A stretch of 19,423 bases of DNA from Octopus sinensis (lineage: Eukaryota): positions 1 through 19,423 of the forward strand of contig NW_021824217.1 in the NCBI RefSeq assembly GCF_006345805.1, given 5' to 3'. The notes under the pieces are model-generated. The model had not been told where the DNA came from. It made no database searches and was given only the letters and a program-made list of their open reading frames with translations. Positions within the stretch are counted from its first letter, which is position 1; each line of letters opens with the position of its first letter. Below are positions 1-19,423 of the stretch, piece after piece. The position numbers and the translations under genes were made by a program.

Positions 1-100
1 CTTTAGCCCCACAACGCCAGGGGTAAGGTCTGCAGACAGGGAGCCCAAGGCGATTGCAGATACCCAAACGGAGTGAATCTCTATCGAAAAATTATAAATA
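1..100 (-). mobile_element. Possible CRE-like (REL-endonuclease) non-LTR retrotransposon remnant; target of the Tc1 insertion, continuing at 4676 to ~4720
   Basis: Removing 101-4675 and one TA gives a continuous minus frame KIGLRPNTYL*FFDRDSLRLGICNRLGLPVCRPYPWRCGAK. From memory this resembles the CRE-clade C-terminal motif (LD..SLRIAVALRLG.P.C.PH.C.CG). The match is short and by eye. Confidence 0.4.
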
Positions 101-310
101 CACTCCTCGCCAAAAAAAATGATTCAAAATTCATATTTAGTTTTTCTTTAAAAATCTTATAAATATTCTAATTTCAAAAAACTTAGTAGATTATTGTAAT
201 TATTATTATTTAATTTTAATAAAATATTTGTTAATTACATTAATTTGGAAAAATTAAAACATGACACACAATATTTAGTATATGTCAGTGACAAAAAAAA
301 GATTCAAAAA
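101..310 (+). repeat. Left long TIR of the Tc1 (IR/DR type)
   Basis: 101 to ~170 is the reverse complement of 4610-4675, and ~163-310 is the reverse complement of 3213-3360. The motif aaaaaaa(t)gattcaaaa occurs at both ends of the TIR (~112-130 and ~292-310). Confidence 0.9.
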
Positions 311-789
311 ATTATCTAAACAAATATCTCTTTATAAGATTTTAATATCTGTATTTTAGGGAAAATCATATGGATGACTTCATGAAAGGAAAAATTATTG
401 CCTATATGAAACCAAAATGCCATTTCGGGCATTTCTTCAAAAGTCGGGGTACATGAGGCAACATTGTCTAATTTTATCCAACGATACAAGAAGACAGGAA
501 AGATTCATCGAAAACCAGATCTGGACGACCAAAAATACTTAATGAAAATGATTAAAAGAATTGATAAAATATTCTGAAGAAAATCCAACAAAAACATCGA
601 AAGAGATCTCAAATGAATCGGGAAACTAACAAATAAAAAATTTCATCATGAACAATTATAAGAAATCTAAATGAAAATGGTATATTTGGGCGTGTCGCTA
701 AAAATAAACCATTTTTGAACAAAAACACTGAAAAAAGATTGAAATAACGAAAAAATTTTTAACCATATCTGATTGACTAGGGCAACCAA

Positions 790-960
790 AAGTCATATAA
801 GTCATATTATTTTTTATTGGTCAATTGATGCTATTTCTATAATTAATAAACTATTATTATATTTTTTAATAGTTTTATTAATTTTTTTAGGTCTTATAGG
901 TCATTTTTATGCCGTTAGGTCATATTATTTTTAGGTCATATTTTTTTGTTAGGTCACTAT
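790..960 (+). repeat. Left subterminal GGTCATAT-like array of the hAT (right array ~2480-2595)
   Basis: Many aggtcatatt/aagtcatat copies in AT-rich context at both ends of 778-2606. Confidence 0.8.
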
Positions 961-1063
961 TTATATTTATTAAATCATATATTTTTATAATCTTTGTTTA
1001 ATTTGACAATTACACGTTTTACACAGTTTTGGTAGTTGGCCGCTTAAATATTATAGATTTTAG

Positions 1064-2424
1064 ATGCCGAAACAAAAGCAATCTAACAATCAAAAGTTAA
1101 TAAATAATTAAACGATACCCGTCTGAATTTCAGATTGATTCGGCTGGACGTTTATTTTGTTTGAAATGCTCAGTTTTTTTTAATTTTACGAAAACGTTAA
1201 ATGTGGTGCAGCACAGGGAAACTACCCGGCTATAAAAAGGAACAGACAAAATTTCCAAACGCAACTCAACACTCTTCCGAAACTTGAAGCAAAGAAAAAT
1301 TTCGGATTTGCTTAGTCGAAGTGATGACGAAGGCGAATATACCTCTTTACAAATAAGAAATGAACACTTTATTAATTTTTTTTAATAATCTCGGATTTAC
1401 TGTTCCCAGAGAAAGTTGGTGCAGAAATATATTTCCAGATTGCATATCAATTGATTGAAATGCTTAAAACAATTATTTCTGGAAAAGATATATTCATACT
1501 TGTTGATGAAACGGAAATAAATAAACAGAAATTTGTTAACGTTCTTTGTGGGACTATTGAAAGTCCTGAAAAAATTTATTTATTAATTGCTTGGAAATTG
1601 AAATTTGTGATGCATCTGCAATTTGTAGAATTGTAGATGAACAATTCGAATTTATGATATAAAAAGGGAAAATTTTTTATTATTTATTTCTGATGCTGCC
1701 GTTATATGACTTTAGCAGCGAGTACATTGAAGGTTATGTATATTAAAATGATTCATATAACTTGTTTTGCTCATCTTCTGCACAATTGTGCATTAAAGAT
1801 TAGATCACATTATAAATATATTGACGACTTAATCTCGTCTATCAAAATGTCGATTGTAAAAAATCCCTCCCGGAGGAGTCTTTTTACAGTTATTGGACTT
1901 CCACCTGATGTTGTTCTAACAAGATGGGGCAGCTGGTTGGGACGCAGCAAAATATTATAGTCGACATCTTTCAAGAGTTCGCGAAATTGTCTTATCCTAT
2001 TGTGGAAAGATTGTGATGAATACGAAAAATGCTGTTAGCTCTGAAAATTTGGAGAAAAATCTGGGAAGAGTTAATGGCTCATACAACCTATTATTGATGA
2101 AATCAGAAAATGGCAAGAAAAATTTTATACAATTAAAGATGCAATTGAATTCATTGATTCCGGTAATTTTGGTGGGGATAATTGTGACATCAACAAGTAT
2201 TTTTTAAAGTGGATAAGTATGTTACCATGGACGATATTAAAAATGCTAGAATTTCTAGTATTTCTCCAGAAACATTTATTTACTTATGGAAATGTCCTTC
2301 AACATCAATATCTGCAGAAAGAAGCTTTTCTATGCTGAATAAATTGCTCAAAAAGGATAGAAACTTCAAGCCAGAAAATATTAAATATTATATGATGCAA
2401 TATTATAATAAATTCATTGATTGA
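1064..2424 (+). pseudogene. hAT transposase pseudogene (ORF-track pieces 1451-1636, 1706-1960, 2013-2207, 2209-2424)
   Basis: Start MPKQKQS at 1064, then a zinc-finger-like LFCLKC..VVQH. Further motifs are ILVDETE, LLFISDAA, HITCFAHLLH (CxxH), VLTRWGSW and PSTSISAERSFS. Frameshifts and stops throughout. Confidence 0.88.
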
Positions 2425-3212
2425 AATGTTTAATTTTTTCATATTTTCAAATTCAGAATATCTAAAAATCAAAATTCGATAGGTCATTTTTGATTTTTAG
2501 GTTATATTTTAATATTTTTAAGTTATATTTTAGAATTTTAAAGTCATAAAGTCATATTTTTTACGGTCATATTTAACTTTTTTAAGGTCATTTTCTGGTT
2601 GCCCTACTGATGACGAATGGAAAAGTACAATTTTTTCGGATGAATGCGTTTTTCACGTGATTCCAAACAAAACAAGAAAATAGTTTATAGGAAAAGCGGT
2701 GAACAATTTAAGTCTAAAAATATTTCAACAACTGTGAAATTTGGAACAGGTGATTTGGTCTGAAATTTTACAGAACAAAAATAGGGAAACTCATGGTATG
2801 GAGATGTTTTTCTTTTAACGGGTTGGAGAATTAGTTTTTGTTGACGGGATATTAAATTTGGCGAATATTTAAACCTTTTAGCCAACAAGCTACAGAGATC
2901 TGTTGCAAAATGGGACTTTGCGATTTCATTTCAGCAGGACAATGCCACCTTGTCATACTGCTAAGTTAATTATGGATTATTTTGAAAAGAAAACATGATC
3001 TGAACCCAATTGAGCATATATGGGCTCATATGAAGGCTGAATTACGCAAAGTCGATGTAAAAAATGTCAAGAACTAAAGCAGGAACTTCTCCATATTTGG
3101 GAAAATATTCCAAAACATTTATTGAAAAACTTATTCTATCAGTTACAAAACGATGCTGGGAAATTTTTACGGCAAAAGGAGAGCATTCCGATATTAATTA
3201 GGAATGGGTTAA

Positions 3213-3360
3213 TTTTGAATCATTTTTTTCACTGACATATACTAACATATTGTGTGTCATGCTTTTAATTTTTCCAAATTAATGTAATTAACAATATTTT
3301 ATTAAAATTTAAATAATAATAGTTCCAACTAATCTATTAAGTTTTTTTGAAATTAGAATA
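3213..3360 (-). repeat. Inner part of the Tc1 right TIR (outer part at 4610-4675)
   Basis: Reverse complement of ~163-310. Joining it to 4615-4675 restores the mirror of the left TIR with a single GAATA. Confidence 0.9.
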
Positions 3361-4609
3361 TGTCACCGGCCACAACTGTTACTCGCCAGATGTGTTACAC
3401 CAACATCAAATGTCAAGTTGGAAAAAACTTAAAACATGAATCCTTTGGTATATTTCTATGAAATCAAAGAAAACTTATAAATTTTTAAAAATATTGATGT
3501 TTTTTAAATTACAAATACACGTTAAAATGCGTTTAGTGCAAGTAACAAAGGAAGACTTAGAATTACTTAAGGAACTTAAGAGCAATCCTGAGCTCGTATT
3601 CGTCAGCAGGACGCTTTCGCGGATGCAAAGATCAAGACTACTGAATTAGCAAATAAATTTGATTTTTTGGATGGAGCTCCTATATCACTAAAGATGGACT
3701 TAAATTAAGATTTTTCTGCAGCGATGAAGCTGAACTTAAAGATAAATATATTGAAGTTTGCATAATAAATGTTTATTTCAATTGGCTGAACATAATTTGA
3801 ATCATTTTGGTCGAGACCGGTTGTTTTCAAAATTGGCGCGCTTATACCACGGAATATCACGTGCAGAGATCAATCGTGTCATAAAACGATGTATTCCTTG
3901 CCAGGTTTTAAGTTTTTTTTATTAATGCAAAATGATGACATAGAATATTTGGAAGAGGAAAGGAATGAAGCGTATGTAAATATTCTGTTGGCAGCTGATA
4001 AAATGGCTCAGAGAAGAAAATGGAAGTATGACGAGGCTACTTTTAGTGTAGGAGAGATAGTAATCTTAAGGTATTTGGGATGTATAAACATGTAATTTAG
4101 GCAAGATAATGACGCTAACAAACGACAATATCCACTTTATGATGGATTAGAGATGGTGAAATACACAATTGTGGCAAAAGACGATTTTGTAGTAACAATA
4201 CAAAGTGAGACAGGTGACATGTATGAGAAATACATGTTTCACGCTTAATTAAAATTGGGAATGATCCTTCTTTTTTGTGATTCCTTGATAGAAAACGTTT
4301 TAAACTAATAAGAGGCTTTTAAAATTTTTTTTATTAAAAAAAAAGAATAATTATTTAATAAAAAAAAGATATGGATAAGCCAAAATTAAATAGATTGCTA
4401 AATAATTTAAAACTCATATTTTACACGGTATGTTGGTTTTTGGGAAAAAATTCATGTTTCAGTCCAAATTTTTTCTATTCAGAAAAGCATATTTTTGCGA
4501 ACAATTAGGTTATGCTTTGTATTAATTTTTAATTTTAAAAGTTTTTATTTCTATTTATATGAATTTTAGTGTAACATATCTGGCGGAGTAACAGTTGTGG
4601 CCTGTGACA
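3361..4609 (+). mobile_element. Non-autonomous Ginger-like (gypsy-integrase-related) DNA transposon, 1249 bp
   Basis: TIRs TGTCACCGGCCACAACTGTTACTC-GCCAGATGTGTTACAC (3361-3400) and the reverse complement at 4569-4609 (2 mismatches, 1 indel). 5-bp TSD GAATA at 3356-3360 and 4610-4614. Integrase HHCC piece EHNLNHFGRDRLFSKLARLYHGISRAEINRVIKRCIPCQ at 3788-3904 and a C-terminal FSVGEIVILR piece. No DDE core visible. Confidence 0.82.
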
Positions 4610-5264
4610 GAATATTTATAAGATTTTCAAAAAAACTAAATATGAATTTTTGAATCATTTTTTTGTCGAGGAGTGTAAGTATTGGGGCGTAACCCTATCT
4701 TACTTAACGTGCATTTTCTCGCGATTACTGTTTTGAATTTCTTGGTACAAAGGAAGGATTAGAATTGTTGACATTCTGGAAAAAGTTTTTAGAAGTAATG
4801 TTAATATTGTAGGTCTTTTTATGAAGCTCCAACAGTGGATACATTATAAAAAATTCTAATTTTACTATGCTCGAAAATTCAAATCATAACATCTGCCATC
4901 TACAATTAAATAAAATTTAATAAATCACATAACTTTCCATTTATTTCATCTTGTTTATTTCAAATTGAAAAAGATATACTTGAAATAAATGAAGTAGATC
5001 TTACGGGTGTACTTTTTCCGTAAAAGTTTATGATTTACCTTCAAGTATCCAAGAATAGCTTAATCGATTTTTTGGTTTTTTTCCGACAACATATCTCTGT
5101 AAACAAAGACTTATTTAATTCAAAATCAGTCCATCGTGCGAGATCAGTCCATCTTTCACTAACAGATCCAAAAATAGAAGGTTAGTCATTGTCGTATATT
5201 ATATCGTCCGGGCAGTTTATATCGTCCGGGTGATGATTTACATTAATCATCTTTAATCTTAGAC

Positions 5265-5303
5265 ACCAAGGGGTATGCGAAACAAAAAGTTTGAGAACTA
5301 CTG
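5265..5303 (+). mobile_element. Orphan terminus of a Buster/Charlie-like hAT element
   Basis: AGGGGTATGCGAAACAAAAAGTTTGAGAACTACTG; its reverse complement CAGTAGTTCTCAAAC matches the CAGTGGTTCTCAAAC-type end. It is followed by CTCTAATG (NNNTANNN target). The other end was not found in the window. Confidence 0.55.
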
Positions 5304-6537
5304 CTCTAATGTAAAGTTAAATGAATATTAACTAGATATCTAGTCAATTTAAACAACTCATATTTGCAATCAAGGTATGATTTTGCAAATTTATTTAATT
5401 TGTTATTGCTTTGAATAAAGCACATTAATCGATATCTGCCAGAATTTTGAACAGTCTTTCTGGGACGAGTTCGCTGGTTGGGGTGGATTCTAAAATCTAT
5501 TGACTATTACTCGACAGAATAATCATACATTGTGCGGAAATGTGTGTACAGTTAGTGTACAATGCTGCCAGAAAATTCTGTAAATATGGCAGTCTACTCT
5601 CCTTTCACAAGTCCTTATAAAAAATCATAAGATTTACCTTGTACACGACGGACAGTTGGTTACTGCTTTATGAGCTCCGTCTGACCCAAAGGTTCATTAC
5701 GAATGAGGGACCTATTCGTCTTTTCTCTTTTTTGAGTTCATGTCCTACAGATTGGGCGTTCATTCCCCAATTCACATGTTTTAGAGACGGACCATGCTCA
5801 TCGACTACAACCAACACGCATGAACCGCTCAATTATTCTAGCAAAAAATAATTGTGGTGGGAAATTCCTGCTATTCCAGATTCAATGACTATTCCCGCTT
5901 CTGACGAGTAAGATAGATCTTTGATTACGTAAATGAGATGGTTGAGATGGCCTACATCTCCGAAGTGGTGGCTAATAATATCATCCCCAGTCGCTTTCCT
6001 TGCCAGATGTGATTATCTCCACTACTCTTCGCGATCCCCAGTTCCAGTTATAATGATTATCATAAAAGATCTGGGATTATTTCATCCACGGGAATAAGGA
6101 TTTGCCATTCAATATCGACTCTTTCGTTTTGCCCGTTTCCAAATATTAATGACCTGCAACCGAATTGTCTGTATGGGAATCGTGTTCGGATTATATGTAA
6201 GCAGGTGGATTGAATAAAAATACGTGTCATGATAAAACCAGTTTTACCGTTCTGCAAGATGCTAAAATTAATTTTCTTTATAAATATTTTTCAAGGATGG
6301 CGGCCATTTCAAGCACATCGAGGAACAGAAGTGTAGATATATGCAACAGATTTCTTTGTTTCTATATGAAGTTTTTAAAATCGGACTGAAAATAACCTGC
6401 AATTCGAGTTTGTCATAATTATAACAGAAATTAGATAATTTGAGTCATTTTGTCAAGGAGGTCAAACGAGATAAACAAGTGGAGCTTACATCACTCGATT
6501 CTCCACTCTCTAACGTTCTTTAATTTAGCAAACAATT

Positions 6538-8110
6538 TTAGTTAGTTAGCTCTTTCGCGTCGCCCTAGAAGGGTTTCGCCTGAGGAATGCCTAGAGCCAT
6601 GCTCCCCGCCATCTTCACCCACGTTCTTTTGTTTCTGGTCTTCATTCGAGCGTCGTACAGATCGTCCGCCGCGACCAGTTTACCGGCGATTGTTGCGTAG
6701 TTTTTCTTTTAGCATGTTGCAAGCGTATTCCTGGTCGCCCTCGATACTCATGAACTTCCGGAGTGGACATATTCATCCATTATTTTGTTACATGATTTAG
6801 AAGGATATGTCCAAATAGTTGCCATCTCGATAAAATAACGTCCATAATGATTTGTATAGATTTACATATATTGTATAATTTTTCTTGGCCAGAAGATTCT
6901 GATCAGTTTACGGAGTTGGTTTTTATGAAATGCATCTAGCTTCTTTAAATCTTTTTTGAAGAAAATTACAGAGCAATATTGGTTTCACAAAAGTATTATA
7001 TAATCTGATGCAAATTTTCATCGGAAAATGCTTTTTTCTTAAACAGATGTGCAATTTTTTAAAGGATGTTGTGGCAAACATCTTTCCTCGGCATCCTAAA
7101 GTAGTAAGCCAAGTTTTTTGTATGTTTCCAATGCTTGTCATTTCTTGATATTGTTTGTTCGATTCGTGTAAAGTCAGTCTTCTTAATGTTTATACGTAAA
7201 TTCAATTTATTCAATATATTTTTGGCCTTGTGTTAAACTTTGTCAACTATTTCCTGGTCAGTAAAGGCAAAGTATACATCGTCAGCGTATAGTAATTCGG
7301 TAATGTCTTCATATTTGGATCCCAGCTCTCCTCGAAATATATGATGATTAGAATAAGAGATTGAGAATTGTGGAGTGCCCATATTAGTGCTAAATCTCCC
7401 TGACTGCTTAGTTCCAATTTTCACAGATAGATCCGTTTTAGAAAGTAATAGACTTATTAGTCTTAGACAATCTTCTTCAAGTTCCTTTAGAACATTCATG
7501 AGTTTTTCTTAATTAATGCTGTCGAAGGTCTTCGTAAAGTCAAATTCTGAAATGTATATGACTTTTGAGTATTTTTGGCATATTGATGTAAGACATCTAT
7601 GGCTCCACACGATATCCGAGATAGATCTTTTACTTCAAAACCCACGTTGACTTTGAGAAAAGTATTTTTCCATAGGCTCTCGTATCCGGTTAAGCACTAT
7701 AATCGATAAAGTTTTCCTGATGGTTGACAGTAGAATAATTGGCCTTAGTCCATCTAGTAATCTTTCTTTTTTCCAGATTGGTGTATTGGGATTAAGACTA
7801 ATGGAAGGGAACAATGAAACTCCATTGACTCGTTTAATATGTTCCTGATTATATTTCAAACGATAGTCGGGGCGTGTTTTAGTAACTCGCCCGGTATACC
7901 ATCAAGCCCGCTGATCGATTGCCTTTAAGGTGCATGAATGCATTGGTTACTTCCCATGTTATAAATTTGGTTATCGTTTAAGCTTCAATCTAGAAACTGT
8001 CAGTTTGTGGTCACTGTCATTTACCGTTCCTCCACAACTTCTAGCGTCGGACAACAATCTCTATAATGAGATTGGGAAGGTAATATAGTCGATTTGATTG
8101 TATATACACA
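6538..8110 (-). mobile_element. Degenerate LINE copy A (APE endonuclease + RT, RTE/RTEX-like), 5' truncated, with 3' tail
   Basis: Endonuclease YNQIDYI (8082-8099) and SDHKL (~8001-8015). RT pieces LSTIRKTLSIIVLNRI, FTKTFDSI, TNMGTPQ and YADD (7278-7289). C-terminal RWQLFGHIL and YRGRP, then a (CTAA)n tail at 6538-6549. Internal deletions and stops. The clade call is tentative. Confidence 0.88.
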
Positions 8111-8114
8111 GCCT

Positions 8115-8450
8115 TTATTGTTAGCTTTAGACCATTGATTAGAACTTCCGAAAACGTAGTAAGTAAACGACTTCGAAACTTTTCTCTAAGTATTTCAAAG
8201 AATTATTCCATGAAGATATTTTCAGGCGTTTCCTGTTCCATTCTTAGAAGATGTCTAAACAACTACCAACGCATCTCCATGATTAGGGTACAGAAGAGGC
8301 CTGAGTAACATCCTTGATACAATAAAATCCTTTACTTCGTTGGCCGTTATTTCCTTTTCGTTAATTTTTCAATAAGAATATTAAAAAATTTTTCTTTACC
8401 AATATCAGTCTTATTTACTTTTTATGAATTAACAATTTGATTATTTCATT
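8115..8450 (-). mobile_element. Second LINE fragment (copy B), RT C-terminal region of a related but distinct family
   Basis: IHKK*IRLIL, LLYQGC..IMEMRW*LFRHLLRMEQETPENIFME..KFRSRLLTTFSEVL parallels the C-terminus of copy A but is clearly diverged. Boundaries are approximate. Confidence 0.65.
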
Positions 8451-8850
8451 AGCTTGTCTTTCGGCAAAAATTTTGACATTGTTTCGACATTTTAATTCTG
8501 AAGGTAACCCGAATCCAATAGTATAAAAATTTATTAAGGGAGGATATCGTAGTTTATATAATGAAATATTCCCCAAAAAAGAGCTTAAGTTAAATTTAGT
8601 AAAAAATCATTCGTACTAAGAGTAAGGAAAAAACTTTTAAGCCCTTTTTTAGTCTCGTTAATATTTTAAATATATTTGTGATTTTTTAAAAAATGCTACA
8701 AAATATAGCATTGATTACAACATAAAGCTTCACTGGGAAATTGAAAATCATTGGGAAATTAATGGACTTTGCAACTTTTATATATCTAAGCTTATCTTTA
8801 TCTGCATTAAAATAATGTATTCCATTTGATAACTTAAGAAATAACGTAAT

Positions 8851-8856
8851 TTTATT
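8851..8856 (-). promoter_or_regulatory. Candidate AATAAA polyadenylation signal of DNAAF5
   Basis: Plus-strand TTTATT, 10 nt past the TAA stop. The region is AT-rich, so a chance occurrence is possible. Confidence 0.4.
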
Positions 8857-8866
8857 AGCCAAACAG

Positions 8867-11555
8867 TTAGGCACAGTCTTCATCCAATCTTTTAAGTAGC
8901 ATATCACAGTAATGAGTCACTCGATGCCTTCCACAAACTTTGACAAGTTCCGCTCTCAACAAATGCCCGTTCACATCAATCAAACTCATCAAGAGCCCTA
9001 ACATTTACTAATAATAAAATAACCACAAACAGACTCCTGAACTGCAACATCGTCCATGTGAATAAGCAAGCATCGAAATATAAACTCAAAATAACTCTCA
9101 CGCTTGTTTGCCAGACCAAAATGACGAATGCAATCGAAATACGAATAAAAAGCTTCCAAAACTTCAAGTCGAATATTGTCGTCACTGTCGTCCATTCGTT
9201 TAAGCAAATTTTCACTGAAGGCAAACAACTTTTCCTCGATGTCAAAATCACAGTTGTTTGTCGGAATTTTTGAAAATATCAACATCAAACTGCTACATAT
9301 TCTGACAGAGAAAAGACGACTCATCGAGTTACTGTCCTCCAAACAAGACGTCAGTGAATTTAAAAGACCAAAGTAAATGTTAGGGGAGAACTCTGCAGAA
9401 ATATTTCGTTGTATGATTTGTTGACTCATCACAGTCCAAAGACAGGCCAAAGCAGCAATTCTCACTGCTGATGCAGAACGACCAGCCTTCCATACTATAT
9501 TGGGAGCAATCAGTCGACCAATAACCCACTCAATTCTACAGATGACCGCCAATCACTTACTCCTCCGAATTAATTATCGTATCGATTTCTTCCAATTGAA
9601 TTACTTTCAAAACAAATCTTGAAAATAAAGATAATATTCGTAATCGAAGGTTTGGGTCACATTCAGTGCTTAAATTTTGTTCAAAATAGGGCCTCGCAAG
9701 ACTCCAAGACGAGACTGTGACTAAAAATAAAATTTAATATAATAGAGACTCGATTCAGAAACAAGACAGTCAAAGAATTTTCCTTCAGGAGAAAAAACCG
9801 TCCACTGAGCATTTGAACCCAACGAGCCAAATAATTGTATAGAGAATTTGTTAACAAGATCTTTAACTGAACCCAGACCTTCCGCCTCTGCCATTTTCTC
9901 CCAAAATAGTTTAATCTCTAATCCCAGTTCTCGATCCTCGGTAATGGAATATATGTACAAACTTCCTTTAAGAACTTCAAAAGTATATTTATAAAAATCA
10001 TCCCCTAAAATATTCCACAATGATACATAACACTCAAACAACGCCCTTTGAGTTAGAGCCTAGGAGTAATAAAATTCCAATACAATTTCAGAGTGGCAGA
10101 CATCATTAAAGGAATTTAATATATTCGGCGCTAACTTATGTAAGAATTTTTCAAATACGTCTTGTGGAATTCCTTTAATCAAGGCACTTAGTACAAAAAG
10201 AGTGCTCTGCGTCAGAATAGGAGACGATAAATTTTTTGAAAGATGACCCAAACATATATCGACTGACAAATCAGGAGATATAAAAAAGCCAGCTATATTG
10301 GCTGCTTTCTGTTAACTAGAATCGAGAGAAATACTTTATAGGAGAGTGTCTGTTCACTGTCAGCTGATATTTTAATGATAATTTGAATAATCAGCTCGGT
10401 ATGTTGAGTCATGTATTCACCAGCATTGATCAGGAGGTAGGGGAGAAGGTCAGCTGCTTTAGAGCGAGTGGAGACAAGCCAGTCTGAAAGATCAGCCATA
10501 AGAGCAAGCAGAATACGCCCAATATTCCTTTTCACAAGCTCACAACAACCCAAATTACATATTTCGTCTAGGATTAGAAACAAAAGATAAAACAAGTAGT
10601 ATCTCCTATCCTAAGGGGCTCACTGCTGTAGGAATATTCCATAAAATCCATTTTATCCTTCAAATCCTCTTCATTTTCTTTCATAAATTTAATTCCCGCA
10701 TCATTCCACAGTGACATCCCCACATTAACAATTGAAGGCTGTCTATCACTGAGGGAGGTAAGAAGAAGAGGAATTAGATTATGGAAGTAGGAGTATCTGT
10801 CAGGCAATTCGATAAGCCACATTCCAACGACACGTGTTGCAGCCTCCCGGACTGTGTGGTTGGGATCAAAGAATCGTTGGGCCAAATGCGGCAATGCCTC
10901 AGTCAATAATTTTCCATTTCCTCTCAAAAGCAGCACGCCTTTGAACATAACACAAAACAAAACCAATTGTCTCCACAATCGTCTTACGTAATTTGGAGTG
11001 CTGATGAACGACGGAGACCAAGAGAGATTTGAGGATAGCCTCAGTCTGGCTATAAATGTGACCTATCTCGGCAAGACGCACTACACAAGAACAAGCCACG
11101 TGTCTGATGGCCGGAAAGGGATCAGTAAGGAATGCGAGCGTAATTTTCCCAACATCTTCAAAAAATGTCATTTCTGGTACAATGAATGAAAGAACGAGTT
11201 GTGCTGCTTGTAGTCTAACTTCTTCGGAGTCTTCAATAAGTGGTTGTTGCGTGTATCTTTGGTGGAAAACTGGGACTATGTATTGCAGAGCTGTTTTCTG
11301 AGCAGAGATGAGAGGGAGGTAGCTGGAGAGAAGAGAAAGAGCCAGTTCTCTGCAGGATTCTACCGGGTCGGATACTATTCTTAGTAGGGGAGTGATTATG
11401 TCGCTAAAAAAGAGTTTCTCAAATTCCTCTCTGTTCATTGCCTTATCGATTGCTTCATGTTGAATACCCAGTAGTGCTTTTTTTCTAATCATTTTGTTTT
11501 CCTCACCCAAACAGTTAATGTGTCGGGCTATTGGCTGGTATATCATGTTTTTCAT
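8867..11555 (-). CDS. DNAAF5: Dynein axonemal assembly factor 5 (HEATR2), HEAT-repeat protein, about 835 aa, 8 exons
   Basis: Exons 11555-10964, 10938-10594, 10567-10335, 10308-10084, 10059-9750, 9720-9561, 9535-9024 and 8997-8867 sum to 2508 nt in frame. Motifs match recalled DNAAF5: DRYSYFHNLIPLLLTSLSD, KENEEDLKDKMDF, LGCCELVKRN, DLSDWLVSTRSKAADLLP, LIAPNIVWKAGRSASAVRIAA, LLKRMDD, LLIHMDD, RHRVTHYCDMLL. A possible extra 5' exon lies at 11625-11584. Confidence 0.95.
8998..10963 (-). other. Seven GT-AG microintrons of DNAAF5
   Basis: 10939-10963 (25 nt), 10568-10593 (26), 10309-10334 (26), 10060-10083 (24), 9721-9749 (29), 9536-9560 (25), 8998-9023 (26). Each restores the reading frame and the homology. 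Confidence 0.9.
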
Positions 11556-12520
11556 AATCAACTTGAATGTTGTTGGATACTACTCTATTATTTCTAGGAA
11601 TAAATGATATATTATTATCTTTCATGATTAAATATAATAATTAACAGAATAATTTGTCCTTAAGACAATTCTGCTATTTGTTGTGATATCTACATTTGGC
11701 AATCTTAGACAAGAAGGCGTCACGTGTTTCACGTAAATGGTCCACTTACAACCAATCCAAAAACTAATTTAATTTTAAATTAACCTGCTTTTCTGGCATG
11801 TTATTAAGTCAGAAGTTCGGCGGAGAATTTCAGAAAATTATGTCACAAACAGGGGGCTTTTTCCAAAAGGATGAAAAGATACGGGAAAATTTCGTTTCCG
11901 CGGTTAACAAGAAGGGGAAAAAATCACGTATCATATATTACTCTTTTCATGATGTCATTGAGCAATGAATGCCAGAGAAACCCCTTTTTTGTCGTATTTT
12001 CAAATTTGTAAACGTTCATTCATTTTAAGTATTTGAAAATATCGTTAAGTAACATAATTAATATTTCTCGCTACTAAGTGTTTCACCGATTTCTGAAATT
12101 CTACAAACTAGAGCTAGAATTACACAAATGTTCTCATGACTCTTTGAAAAACCGTGTTTTGGATATCTACGACCTGATTGTCCAAAAGAGTGATTTGGCC
12201 TTTTCCCTTCATTTCAAAAATTAGTATTCCGATTTAAAGAGACTTTATTGTTTTTGTATAATAATCTGTTCCACATACAGTAGCAATCTATAAAATTTAC
12301 TAATGTTCTGCCAGGAAATTTTCTAAAGAAAAATAAATTCATCTCCTTTCAGAAACTGATGAATTGCATTTCAAGAGGTTTTACTCATCCAAAACCGTCC
12401 ACCCTGACAATAGACATCTAACAATTATCTGATTTTCCCCCATACGAGCAGATTTATTTCATTTAATCGTTCAGCCTCCTATAAAATAATAATTCACGTT
12501 AAAACAATTACGTTAGCCTA

Positions 12521-13300
12521 ATGGCCCAAATGAGGATGTTTATTAAAACTGATACAGAGTACAATCCACTAAAATCCGTTCTTGAAGGTCAAGACGTAAA
12601 TATTTCAAAAGTTAAAAATTTCCGGGTAAGAAAGAAAGCTGAAAATTTCATTCTTATTCACGGAAAGCCATATCTGCGAAATAATAATCGACTTCACAAG
12701 CTTTTCATAGCTTTAACAAGCACAGAAGAAATGAAAATCATTGCTTAAGAAATTCACGAAACAAATCATTGTGGGCATAATGCTCTGGATGCACTTTGCA
12801 GAAGGAGATTTTTTGTAATCAAGCGAAACATCATTCGTCAAGTCGTAACTGAGTGCAATATATGCAAGTTTGCTGTGCAGTATGACGATTCGAGCCATAT
12901 TGTCGCTGATTTACCTGATGAAAGGTTTCAATTCGATTTAATTAATCTTAAAAGTTTTAAAGTTTATTGGTTATTATTGTAGATTTAAGAATCAAAATGA
13001 TCATTTTTCTTGATTAATTTCTGTAGTCGAAATATGCATTCACTAGGAACATTCTGAACAAAAGTGGAAGAGAAGTGGCCGACAAATTAGAAGAAATTTT
13101 TGTGAATTTAACATTGGAAATAAAGTATCAACAACTCCACACATTGACTGGAATCTACTAGCAAAAAGAAATTTCAAAGGAAAATTTATATTCGAGATAT
13201 AAATCCACCCCAATCCGCTACTCTATTAACATGGAAATTATTTGACTTGAACGCGAACACGCAGTTTAACAAATAATGGAAGAATACTTCTACTGCAGCG
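12521..13300 (+). pseudogene. Degenerate retroviral-type integrase gene (Ginger-like or gypsy-derived)
   Basis: After the TAA at 12746-12748 the frame continues EIHETNHCGHNALDALCRRRFFVIKRNIIRQVVTECNICK (HHCC). It is followed by IVADLPDERFQFDLINL, NQNDHFS*LISVVEI and NKSGREVADKLEEIF (start of the rve core). No TIR, LTR or RT found. The end is approximate. Confidence 0.8.
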
Positions 13301-13507
13301 AAGGCAACAGATTTTAGAAGAGAACAAGTAAATTTCTCTAAGAACTTTATATTAAAATTTCTGATATTTTTAATAATTTTAAATAAACTATTAAAAAATA
13401 GGACGACTAATGAATATTCCATGTCCCATTTACATAATCAGCGAAGTGAATGATATTAAAGTTTCTTAAAAAAATCAGTTAATTAATCGTATAGTTTAAA
13501 TCATAGA

Positions 13508-19423
<5,916 letters not shown>

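Follow-up and report, generated by a model that had tools for sequence, protein, structure and literature searches.

How do two conserved animal genes, filed under the name of an octopus, come to be interrupted 29 times by segments of 23-29 nucleotides (nt), and to whom do they belong? The question is raised by a contig deposited as Octopus sinensis (VCDQ01007178.1 of assembly GCA_006345805.1), which we analyzed over its complete length of 19,423 bp and refer to as the window. All features at issue lie on its minus strand, where a gene for the heavy chain of non-muscle myosin II (NMII) occupies positions 13508-19423 and a gene for dynein axonemal assembly factor 5 (DNAAF5, also HEATR2) occupies positions 8867-11555. 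We conclude that these are very probably two conserved metazoan genes with shrunken ancestral spliceosomal introns, from an organism that is most likely a dicyemid and was co-assembled with its host.

Before splicing, the open reading frame (ORF) track breaks both genes into pieces of 50-417 amino acids (aa). We modeled introns with a custom protein-guided spliced aligner that used BLOSUM62, a flat intron penalty, and reference homologues taken from the protein database. Because the aligner was free to choose GT..AG introns of 12-300 nt and had no length prior, the narrow range of 23-29 nt was not imposed. For the myosin motor domain and neck it returned 13 introns, each 20-28 nt long, and for DNAAF5 seven consistent ones; seven further introns were placed in the myosin tail by frame restoration. 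A stop-free path through both genes was possible using only GT..AG segments of at most 35 nt. As a gene model, the minimum-intron version of such a path chose wrong frames and skipped exons, and it was replaced by the spliced aligner; a codon-usage dynamic program skipped short real exons and was likewise rejected. Two in-frame candidates, at 10205-10225 (21 nt) and 9215-9226 (12 nt), removed neither a stop nor a frameshift, appeared in some alignments only, and were discarded as gap artifacts. A 20-nt phase-2 alternative at 9702-9721 was also rejected, since the orthologous intron is in phase 1 at the site of the 29-nt intron.

Once the segments were removed, no stop codon and no frameshift was left across 7.9 kb of coding sequence. 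The spliced myosin is 1,788 aa long, ends in ...PDEDE followed by a stop, and is colinear in one stretch with residues 148-1935 of human MYH10; its N-terminal ~147 residues lie beyond the contig end. Motor domain, IQ neck, and long coiled-coil rod follow each other in the order of a class II myosin, with Pfam matches to Myosin_head (803.6 bits) and Myosin_tail_1 (504.7 bits, profile positions 2-1076 over residues 688-1762). The catalytic motifs GESGAGKT and the DIAGFE switch II region are intact, and the whole rod aligns to smooth-muscle myosin with one 2-residue gap only. Matches to NMII from arthropods, molluscs, a brachiopod, and vertebrates reached 42-44% identity at 98-100% coverage, with proteins named 'myosin heavy chain, non-muscle', zipper, and MYH9/10 as the best full-length relatives. 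The DNAAF5 coding sequence runs to a stop at 8867-8869. Its product matches TPR_DNAAF5 (297.2 bits) and HEAT_DAAF5 (120.1 bits) in Pfam and, at 835 aa as compared with 828-842 aa in molluscs, is 34-37% identical to mollusc DNAAF5 at 99% coverage.

The set obtained in this way comprises 22 myosin and seven DNAAF5 introns (Table 1), all with GT..AG termini. Four are 23 nt long, seven 24, eight 25, four 26, three 27, two 28, and one 29, giving a mean of 25.2, a median of 25, and a standard deviation of 1.6 nt. Phases 0, 1, and 2 are represented by 15, 7, and 7 introns, and lengths leaving a remainder of 0, 1, or 2 on division by three by 10, 10, and 9. GC content is 31% in the introns as opposed to 44% in the myosin exons and 40% in those of DNAAF5. 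A first-pass annotation of this DNA had claimed 29 frame-validated introns of 23-29 nt between 8998 and 19334 in two intron-rich animal genes. We obtained the same count and range, with those coordinates being the outermost intron ends, and the frame validation was reproduced, except that myosin intron 21 draws instead on homology and position. With 4.1 introns per kb of coding sequence in myosin and 2.8 in DNAAF5, both are indeed intron-rich metazoan genes.

Were they retained, 27 of the 29 introns would introduce a premature stop, either inside the intron or within the next 30 codons. An in-frame stop is present in nine of the ten introns with a length divisible by three, a ratio that is not interpretable because stop-free introns of such lengths are under-detected by frame-based methods. 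The sole exception is myosin intron 21, which, being in-frame and stop-free, is supported by homology and position conservation rather than by frame. It was spotted through nine extra rod residues relative to solved NMII structures: if retained, it would put LLCCNKNSR in place of one Arg, lengthen the rod by those nine residues, and break the heptad phase. Splicing it raised the score against NMII in the PDB from 51.4 to 65.8 bits and restored 145 versus 144 aligned residues. Myosin intron 22 holds the TAA that closes the unspliced ORF, and its removal gives a myosin tailpiece. Splicing of myosin intron 4 restores ...GGASVMTYLLEKSRS.

Pairs of GT and AG spaced 23-29 nt apart abound in random sequence, so their presence alone is meaningless and we applied three controls. 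One was length: although the aligner could choose anything from 12 to 300 nt, every robust intron came out within a span of 7 nt. In the next, the stop-free search was repeated for 256 donor/acceptor dinucleotide pairs and the products were scored against a reference protein. GT-AG attained the top homology score of the 256 in both genes, and most runner-up pairs were one-base shifts of the same segments. For the third control, we rebuilt the exon-intron structures of orthologues from genomic sequence and mapped the intron positions onto alignments of the proteins. The NMII gene of the abalone Haliotis asinina spans 62 kb with 35 introns of 185-24,788 nt (median 514). Sixteen of the 22 myosin introns coincide with one of these exactly in alignment column and phase, and two more lie at most three columns away in the same phase. 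The Lingula NMII locus is masked for residues 396-1166, leaving ~60% of the protein readable; 9 of 13 testable introns matched exactly and two were near. For DNAAF5, the comparators were oyster and Octopus bimaculoides, with nine introns each (154-440 nt and 128-1,120 nt, respectively). Four of the seven window introns agreed with these exactly in column and phase, two were within 2-5 columns beside alignment gaps and in the same phase, and one was unique. The binomial probability of exact coincidences by chance was ~4e-31 for myosin and ~6e-9 for DNAAF5. Myosin introns 21 and 22, for which other support was weak, have exact matches in both Haliotis and Lingula.

Conservation of both position and phase implies ancestral bilaterian introns that were shortened, as opposed to gained or imagined. 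Among arguments available from sequence, position conservation is the decisive control for true introns. On these grounds, the 29 segments are true introns as judged from alignment, and 22 of them are demonstrably, by their aligned positions, shortened versions of orthologous introns that measure 128 to ~25,000 nt in molluscs and a brachiopod. Five microintrons had no counterpart in the mollusc orthologues examined (myosin introns 2, 14, 15, and 17 and DNAAF5 intron 6). Myosin introns 2 and 17 had no Lingula counterpart either, and the sites of introns 14 and 15 are masked in the Lingula locus. These five are either ancestral introns that the compared lineages have lost or introns newly acquired by the parasite lineage. 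In the opposite direction, the window genes lack 16 of the abalone NMII introns and three of the mollusc DNAAF5 introns.

Table 1. Coordinates of genes, introns, and other features in the window. Haliotis and Lingula refer to NMII; oyster and octopus (O. bimaculoides) refer to DNAAF5. Exact, same alignment column and phase.
Feature	Position	Strand	Length (nt)	Phase	Evidence or remarks
NMII heavy chain gene	13508..19423	-			23 exons; 5' end lost at contig end
Myosin intron 1	19310..19334	-	25	2	Spliced alignment; exact in Haliotis, Lingula
Myosin intron 2	19190..19212	-	23	0	Removes stops and frameshift; variable surface loop
Myosin intron 3	19073..19096	-	24	0	Spliced alignment; exact in Haliotis, Lingula
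Myosin intron 4	18985..19008	-	24	1	Exact in Haliotis, Lingula
Myosin intron 5	18864..18888	-	25	1	Spliced alignment; exact in Haliotis, Lingula
Myosin intron 6	18697..18719	-	23	1	Same phase, one column off Haliotis/Lingula intron (gap)
Myosin intron 7	18456..18478	-	23	0	Spliced alignment; exact in Haliotis
Myosin intron 8	17658..17681	-	24	0	Spliced alignment; exact in Haliotis
Myosin intron 9	17439..17465	-	27	0	Spliced alignment; exact in Haliotis
Myosin intron 10	17250..17277	-	28	2	Spliced alignment; exact in Haliotis
Myosin intron 11	17116..17140	-	25	0	Spliced alignment; exact in Haliotis
Myosin intron 12	16888..16911	-	24	0	Spliced alignment; exact in Haliotis
Myosin intron 13	16715..16738	-	24	2	Spliced alignment; exact in Haliotis
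Myosin intron 14	16572..16599	-	28	0	Frame restoration; tail colinear with PDB myosins
Myosin intron 15	16391..16415	-	25	0	Frame restoration; tail colinear with PDB myosins
Myosin intron 16	15859..15883	-	25	0	Frame restoration; exact in Haliotis, Lingula
Myosin intron 17	15626..15651	-	26	0	Frame restoration
Myosin intron 18	15345..15367	-	23	0	Frame restoration; exact in Haliotis, Lingula
Myosin intron 19	15040..15063	-	24	2	Frame restoration; exact in Haliotis, Lingula
Myosin intron 20	14840..14864	-	25	0	Two columns off Haliotis/Lingula intron, same phase, beside 2-residue gap
Myosin intron 21	13881..13907	-	27	2	In-frame, stop-free; exact in Haliotis, Lingula
Myosin intron 22	13575..13601	-	27	2	Matches last rod intron of Haliotis, Lingula exactly
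DNAAF5 (HEATR2) gene	8867..11555	-			Complete; 8 exons; 835 aa
DNAAF5 intron 1	10939..10963	-	25	1	5/5 reference alignments; exact in oyster, octopus
DNAAF5 intron 2	10568..10593	-	26	1	Acceptor directly before E-x-x-NLGC, as in oyster, octopus
DNAAF5 intron 3	10309..10334	-	26	0	Two columns off oyster/octopus intron, same phase
DNAAF5 intron 4	10060..10083	-	24	0	Spliced alignment; exact in oyster, octopus
DNAAF5 intron 5	9721..9749	-	29	1	Longest of the set; 4/5 alignments; exact in oyster, one gap column off in octopus
DNAAF5 intron 6	9536..9560	-	25	2	5/5 alignments
DNAAF5 intron 7	8998..9023	-	26	1	5/5 alignments; exact in oyster, octopus
Integrase H2C2 zinc-finger	3755-3922	+			Passes Pfam cut-off
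Integrase H2C2 match, weaker	12749-12979	+			Between both genes; in-frame stop just upstream
hAT dimerization match, weak	2188-2421	+			Pfam
Reverse-transcriptase-like pieces	7236-7508, 7638-7901	-			YADD motif; by eye
Tc1/mariner-like pieces	410-574, 2534-2680, 3041-3232	+			By eye

Having placed the introns, we turned to the question of whose DNA the contig represents. A 30-Mb scaffold of O. sinensis carries the octopus's own DNAAF5 (XP_029649683.1), a protein that clusters with O. bimaculoides DNAAF5 at ≥ 90% identity. The octopus gene structure was read from the O. bimaculoides orthologue. Given that the octopus protein is only 33% identical to that of the window, and that the introns of its orthologue measure 128-1,120 nt, the contig is foreign. 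The closest relatives of the window DNAAF5 are those of molluscs and a nemertean, which is consistent with placing dicyemids among spiralians. Motile cilia, which DNAAF5 serves, cover dicyemids. Dicyemids inhabit cephalopod renal sacs and are kidney parasites of O. sinensis, and Dicyema japonicum was isolated from the renal sacs of this very host (PMC6736024). Among 51 animal genomes, introns under 30 nt occurred only in dicyemids and myxobolid myxozoans (PMC13644364). From the indirect evidence of host, intron architecture, and spiralian affinity we infer with high confidence that the source organism is a dicyemid (Dicyemida). Parasite DNA probably entered the assembly together with that of the host and was then filed as an unplaced contig of the octopus. 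The first-pass annotation had described the architecture as that of an animal. This holds for the genes, which are metazoan, and fails for the labeled organism, the octopus, as the contig is almost certainly a dicyemid contaminant.

Very short introns were already known for Dicyema, as the first-pass annotation had also noted. In D. acuticephalum, 16 introns verified by cDNA measure 26.2 ± 1.9 nt and sit at conserved positions (Aruga et al. 2007, PMC2222250), and 40 genes of D. japonicum were reported to have a 'conservative exon/intron structure' (Ogino et al. 2010 Gene 449:70). The median intron is 27 nt in Dicyema sp. (Zverkov et al. 2019, PMC6543705), and microintrons of D. japonicum are also described by Lu et al. 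2019 (PMC6736024) and Hadjez et al. 2026 (PMC13644364). The window resembles these published dicyemids in its narrow lengths (25.2 ± 1.6 nt) and in its GT-AG introns, which show little extended consensus and no polypyrimidine tract. It further shares with them genes rich in introns that keep conserved positions, strongly diverged proteins with spiralian affinities, and the host O. sinensis. In D. japonicum and myxobolids, the 5' signal is cut to 'GTa' and the 3' signal to 'AG', with a short, weakly conserved A-run upstream (PMC13644364). The window signals match this reduced form, and differ in detail in that A and T are equally frequent at +3 and T predominates at -3. Unlike the published dicyemid sequences, the window record is filed under the name of the host, and its dicyemid identity is deduced.

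The contig does not stand alone in the assembly. Where a myosin of ≥ 1,788 aa and a DNAAF5 of 835 aa belong, its deposited annotation has fragments with lengths of 258, 342, 390, and ≥ 122 aa, which bears out an earlier expectation that gene finders would miss such introns. A one-residue variant (H to Y) of the 258-aa fragment (window 17670-18446, minus strand) is the RefSeq protein XP_029653842.2 (UniProt A0A6P7TX27), named 'myosin-11-like [Octopus sinensis]'. This protein is encoded on a separate contig of 65,625 bp in the same species record. The second copy on another contig implies that the parasite contributed at least two contigs, the additional one coming from another haplotype, another strain, or a co-infecting species. 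Literature searches brought up no account of dicyemid DNA contaminating the O. sinensis assembly.

Could the DNA derive from some other octopus-associated organism with microintrons, such as a myxozoan, a ciliate (e.g., a renal chromidinid), or an undescribed reduced spiralian? We consider this improbable, although introns below 30 nt are known in myxobolid myxozoans and in ciliates (PMC13644364), and the protein searches returned no Dicyema sequence for comparison. The class II myosin with its 1,075-residue rod and the mollusc- or nemertean-like DNAAF5 point to a bilaterian or spiralian animal, as do the 16 of 22 myosin intron positions in common with a mollusc. Motile cilia are, to our knowledge, absent from myxozoans, and a conserved DNAAF5 would be unexpected there. 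The likeness of myxobolids (Henneguya salminicola, Thelohanellus kitauei, and Myxobolus; PMC13644364) extends to several features: their introns have medians of 22-27 nt, the reduced GTa and AG signals, the weak A-run, and conserved positions in a parasitic animal. However, these are cnidarians in which shortening was convergent, whereas the gene content and affinities of the window fit a ciliated spiralian. Uniform tiny GT-AG introns, whose retention usually brings a premature stop, are likewise found in Paramecium (~25 nt), Stentor (15-16 nt), and the Bigelowiella nucleomorph (in PMC2222250 and PMC13644364), none of which is an animal. Variant genetic codes of ciliates disagree with the window, in which TAA, TAG, and TGA all act as stops, in that removing stop-bearing segments restores colinearity. 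We also know of no class II myosin in ciliates. An undescribed dicyemid-like spiralian would be inseparable from Dicyema on these data.

More improbable still is that the contig is genuine O. sinensis nuclear DNA, either as a second, divergent gene set with microintrons or through horizontal transfer from the parasite. The record was deposited as O. sinensis, and a RefSeq protein is annotated both on this contig and on the second one of 65.6 kb. Against this stand the octopus's own divergent DNAAF5 on a chromosome-scale scaffold and the nine introns of 128-1,120 nt in the O. bimaculoides orthologue. The contig itself is a 19-kb unplaced sequence with no identifiable octopus gene, and the foreign architecture is common to both of its genes. 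Their intact, conserved, full-length ORFs favor a living genome over a transferred relic.

If the genes belong to a dicyemid, what would direct the removal of such short introns? Position +3 is A in 12 introns and T in 12 (24 of 29), and an extended GTAAGT-type consensus is absent. At the 3' end, position -3 is T in 19 introns and C in 7, giving a YAG acceptor in 26 of 29. No polypyrimidine tract was found in the 29 introns beyond general T-richness. An A occupies position -8 from the 3' end in 17 of 29 introns, whereas A makes up 27.5% of intron interiors (uncorrected P = 4e-4). Positions +17 and +18 from the 5' end are A in 13 and 15 introns, respectively. With introns of only 23-29 nt, it is impossible to say from which end this enriched A is measured. 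The motif T[AG]A[CT] occurred in 19 introns versus 11.8 ± 2.7 in composition-preserving shuffles (P = 0.0055). With n = 29, the enriched A is suggestive only as a candidate branch point.

These observations would fit a mechanism in which ancestral spliceosomal introns were kept at ancient positions and shrunk to a uniform 23-29 nt. A conventional U2-type spliceosome could then remove them by intron definition with minimal signals: a donor GT with A or T as the next base, a YAG acceptor, and an A resembling a branch point ~8 nt before the 3' end (17-18 nt past the 5' end). Recognition may be aided by the length and AT-richness of the introns themselves, and premature stops upon retention could allow quality control by nonsense-mediated decay. 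Removal at the DNA level, as for short internal eliminated sequences of Paramecium, is suggested by the similar size range of those ciliate elements and deserves next to no credence. Even when every equivalent shift was considered, none of the 29 segments could be read as an excision bounded by TA, whereas all 29 have GT..AG termini, the best of the 256 pairs. In addition, most segments sit at spliceosomal intron positions and phases of other animals, and a comparison of genomic and cDNA sequences confirmed Dicyema introns of the same size (PMC2222250). Decay into pseudogenes with insertions, or assembly error, without any splicing, would account for the fragmented raw ORF track but can be all but dismissed, because the interruptions are all separate GT..AG blocks, 23-29 nt long, positions are conserved, catalytic motifs are intact, and the 7.9-kb coding sequence is free of stops and frameshifts after removal.

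Several points weigh against splicing of these introns in a dicyemid as we propose it. The branch-point signal is weak with n = 29, and protein database searches gave no nearly identical product crossing a junction, such as would demonstrate splicing. The boundaries of two introns can be drawn in more than one way. For myosin intron 2, a donor at 19209, 3 nt downstream, would give an intron of 20 nt. For DNAAF5 intron 2, a donor at 10623, 30 nt upstream, would give one of 56 nt with the same acceptor. The aligner favored the 56-nt option at 10568-10623, whose extra 30 nt have exon-like composition, and the boundary is ambiguous. Named Dicyema sequences were absent from the protein database search results, such that the taxon is a matter of deduction and not of sequence identity. 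Octopus genomes are of similar GC content to the window. The window's 36.0% agrees with the 36.7% of the D. japonicum genome (PMC6736024) but does not discriminate. Finally, the window is without the tail of introns ≥ 30 nt seen in genome-wide dicyemid annotations, as all 29 fall below that length.

Outside the two genes, positions 1-8860 and 11600-13500 hold no intact gene and only short ORFs resembling decayed transposable elements (Table 1). The reverse-transcriptase-like fragments were not recognized by Pfam, and Rfam detected no RNA gene in the window. Such remains fit the repeat content of 49% reported for D. japonicum. The left quarter of the contig (1-5000) is AT-rich, with 26-31% GC as compared to 40-44% in the gene-bearing right half, for which either repeat decay or a chimeric join could be responsible.

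The window is thus a clean, homology-anchored instance of a known microintron architecture, the biology of which has been established since 2007, with genome-wide confirmation in 2019 and 2026. Its modest addition to the literature is that all 29 introns are below 30 nt and that this contig and at least one more reside in a public octopus assembly. In published dicyemid annotations, one third of introns are ≥ 30 nt and the mean is 38 nt. If one third were truly that long and lengths were independent, the probability of finding 29 of 29, most of them anchored by a conserved position, inside the range would be ~8e-6, although two genes are a small and correlated sample. A tentative and rather doubtful idea is that dicyemid intron length may be confined to a hard range of ~23-29 nt, with length serving as a splicing ruler and the published long tail being largely an annotation artifact.

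Compaction is such that a stretch of 5.9 kb here contains 91% of the coding sequence of a myosin whose gene takes up 62 kb in abalone. Such loci will be misread by users of the assembly and by pipelines whose lower limit for introns is set at ~30 nt or above, and fragments of parasite genes have been propagated in RefSeq and UniProt as octopus proteins ('myosin-11-like'). As a by-product of the tentative reading above, if true, a substantial and possibly undescribed dicyemid genome might be recoverable from the public O. sinensis assembly.

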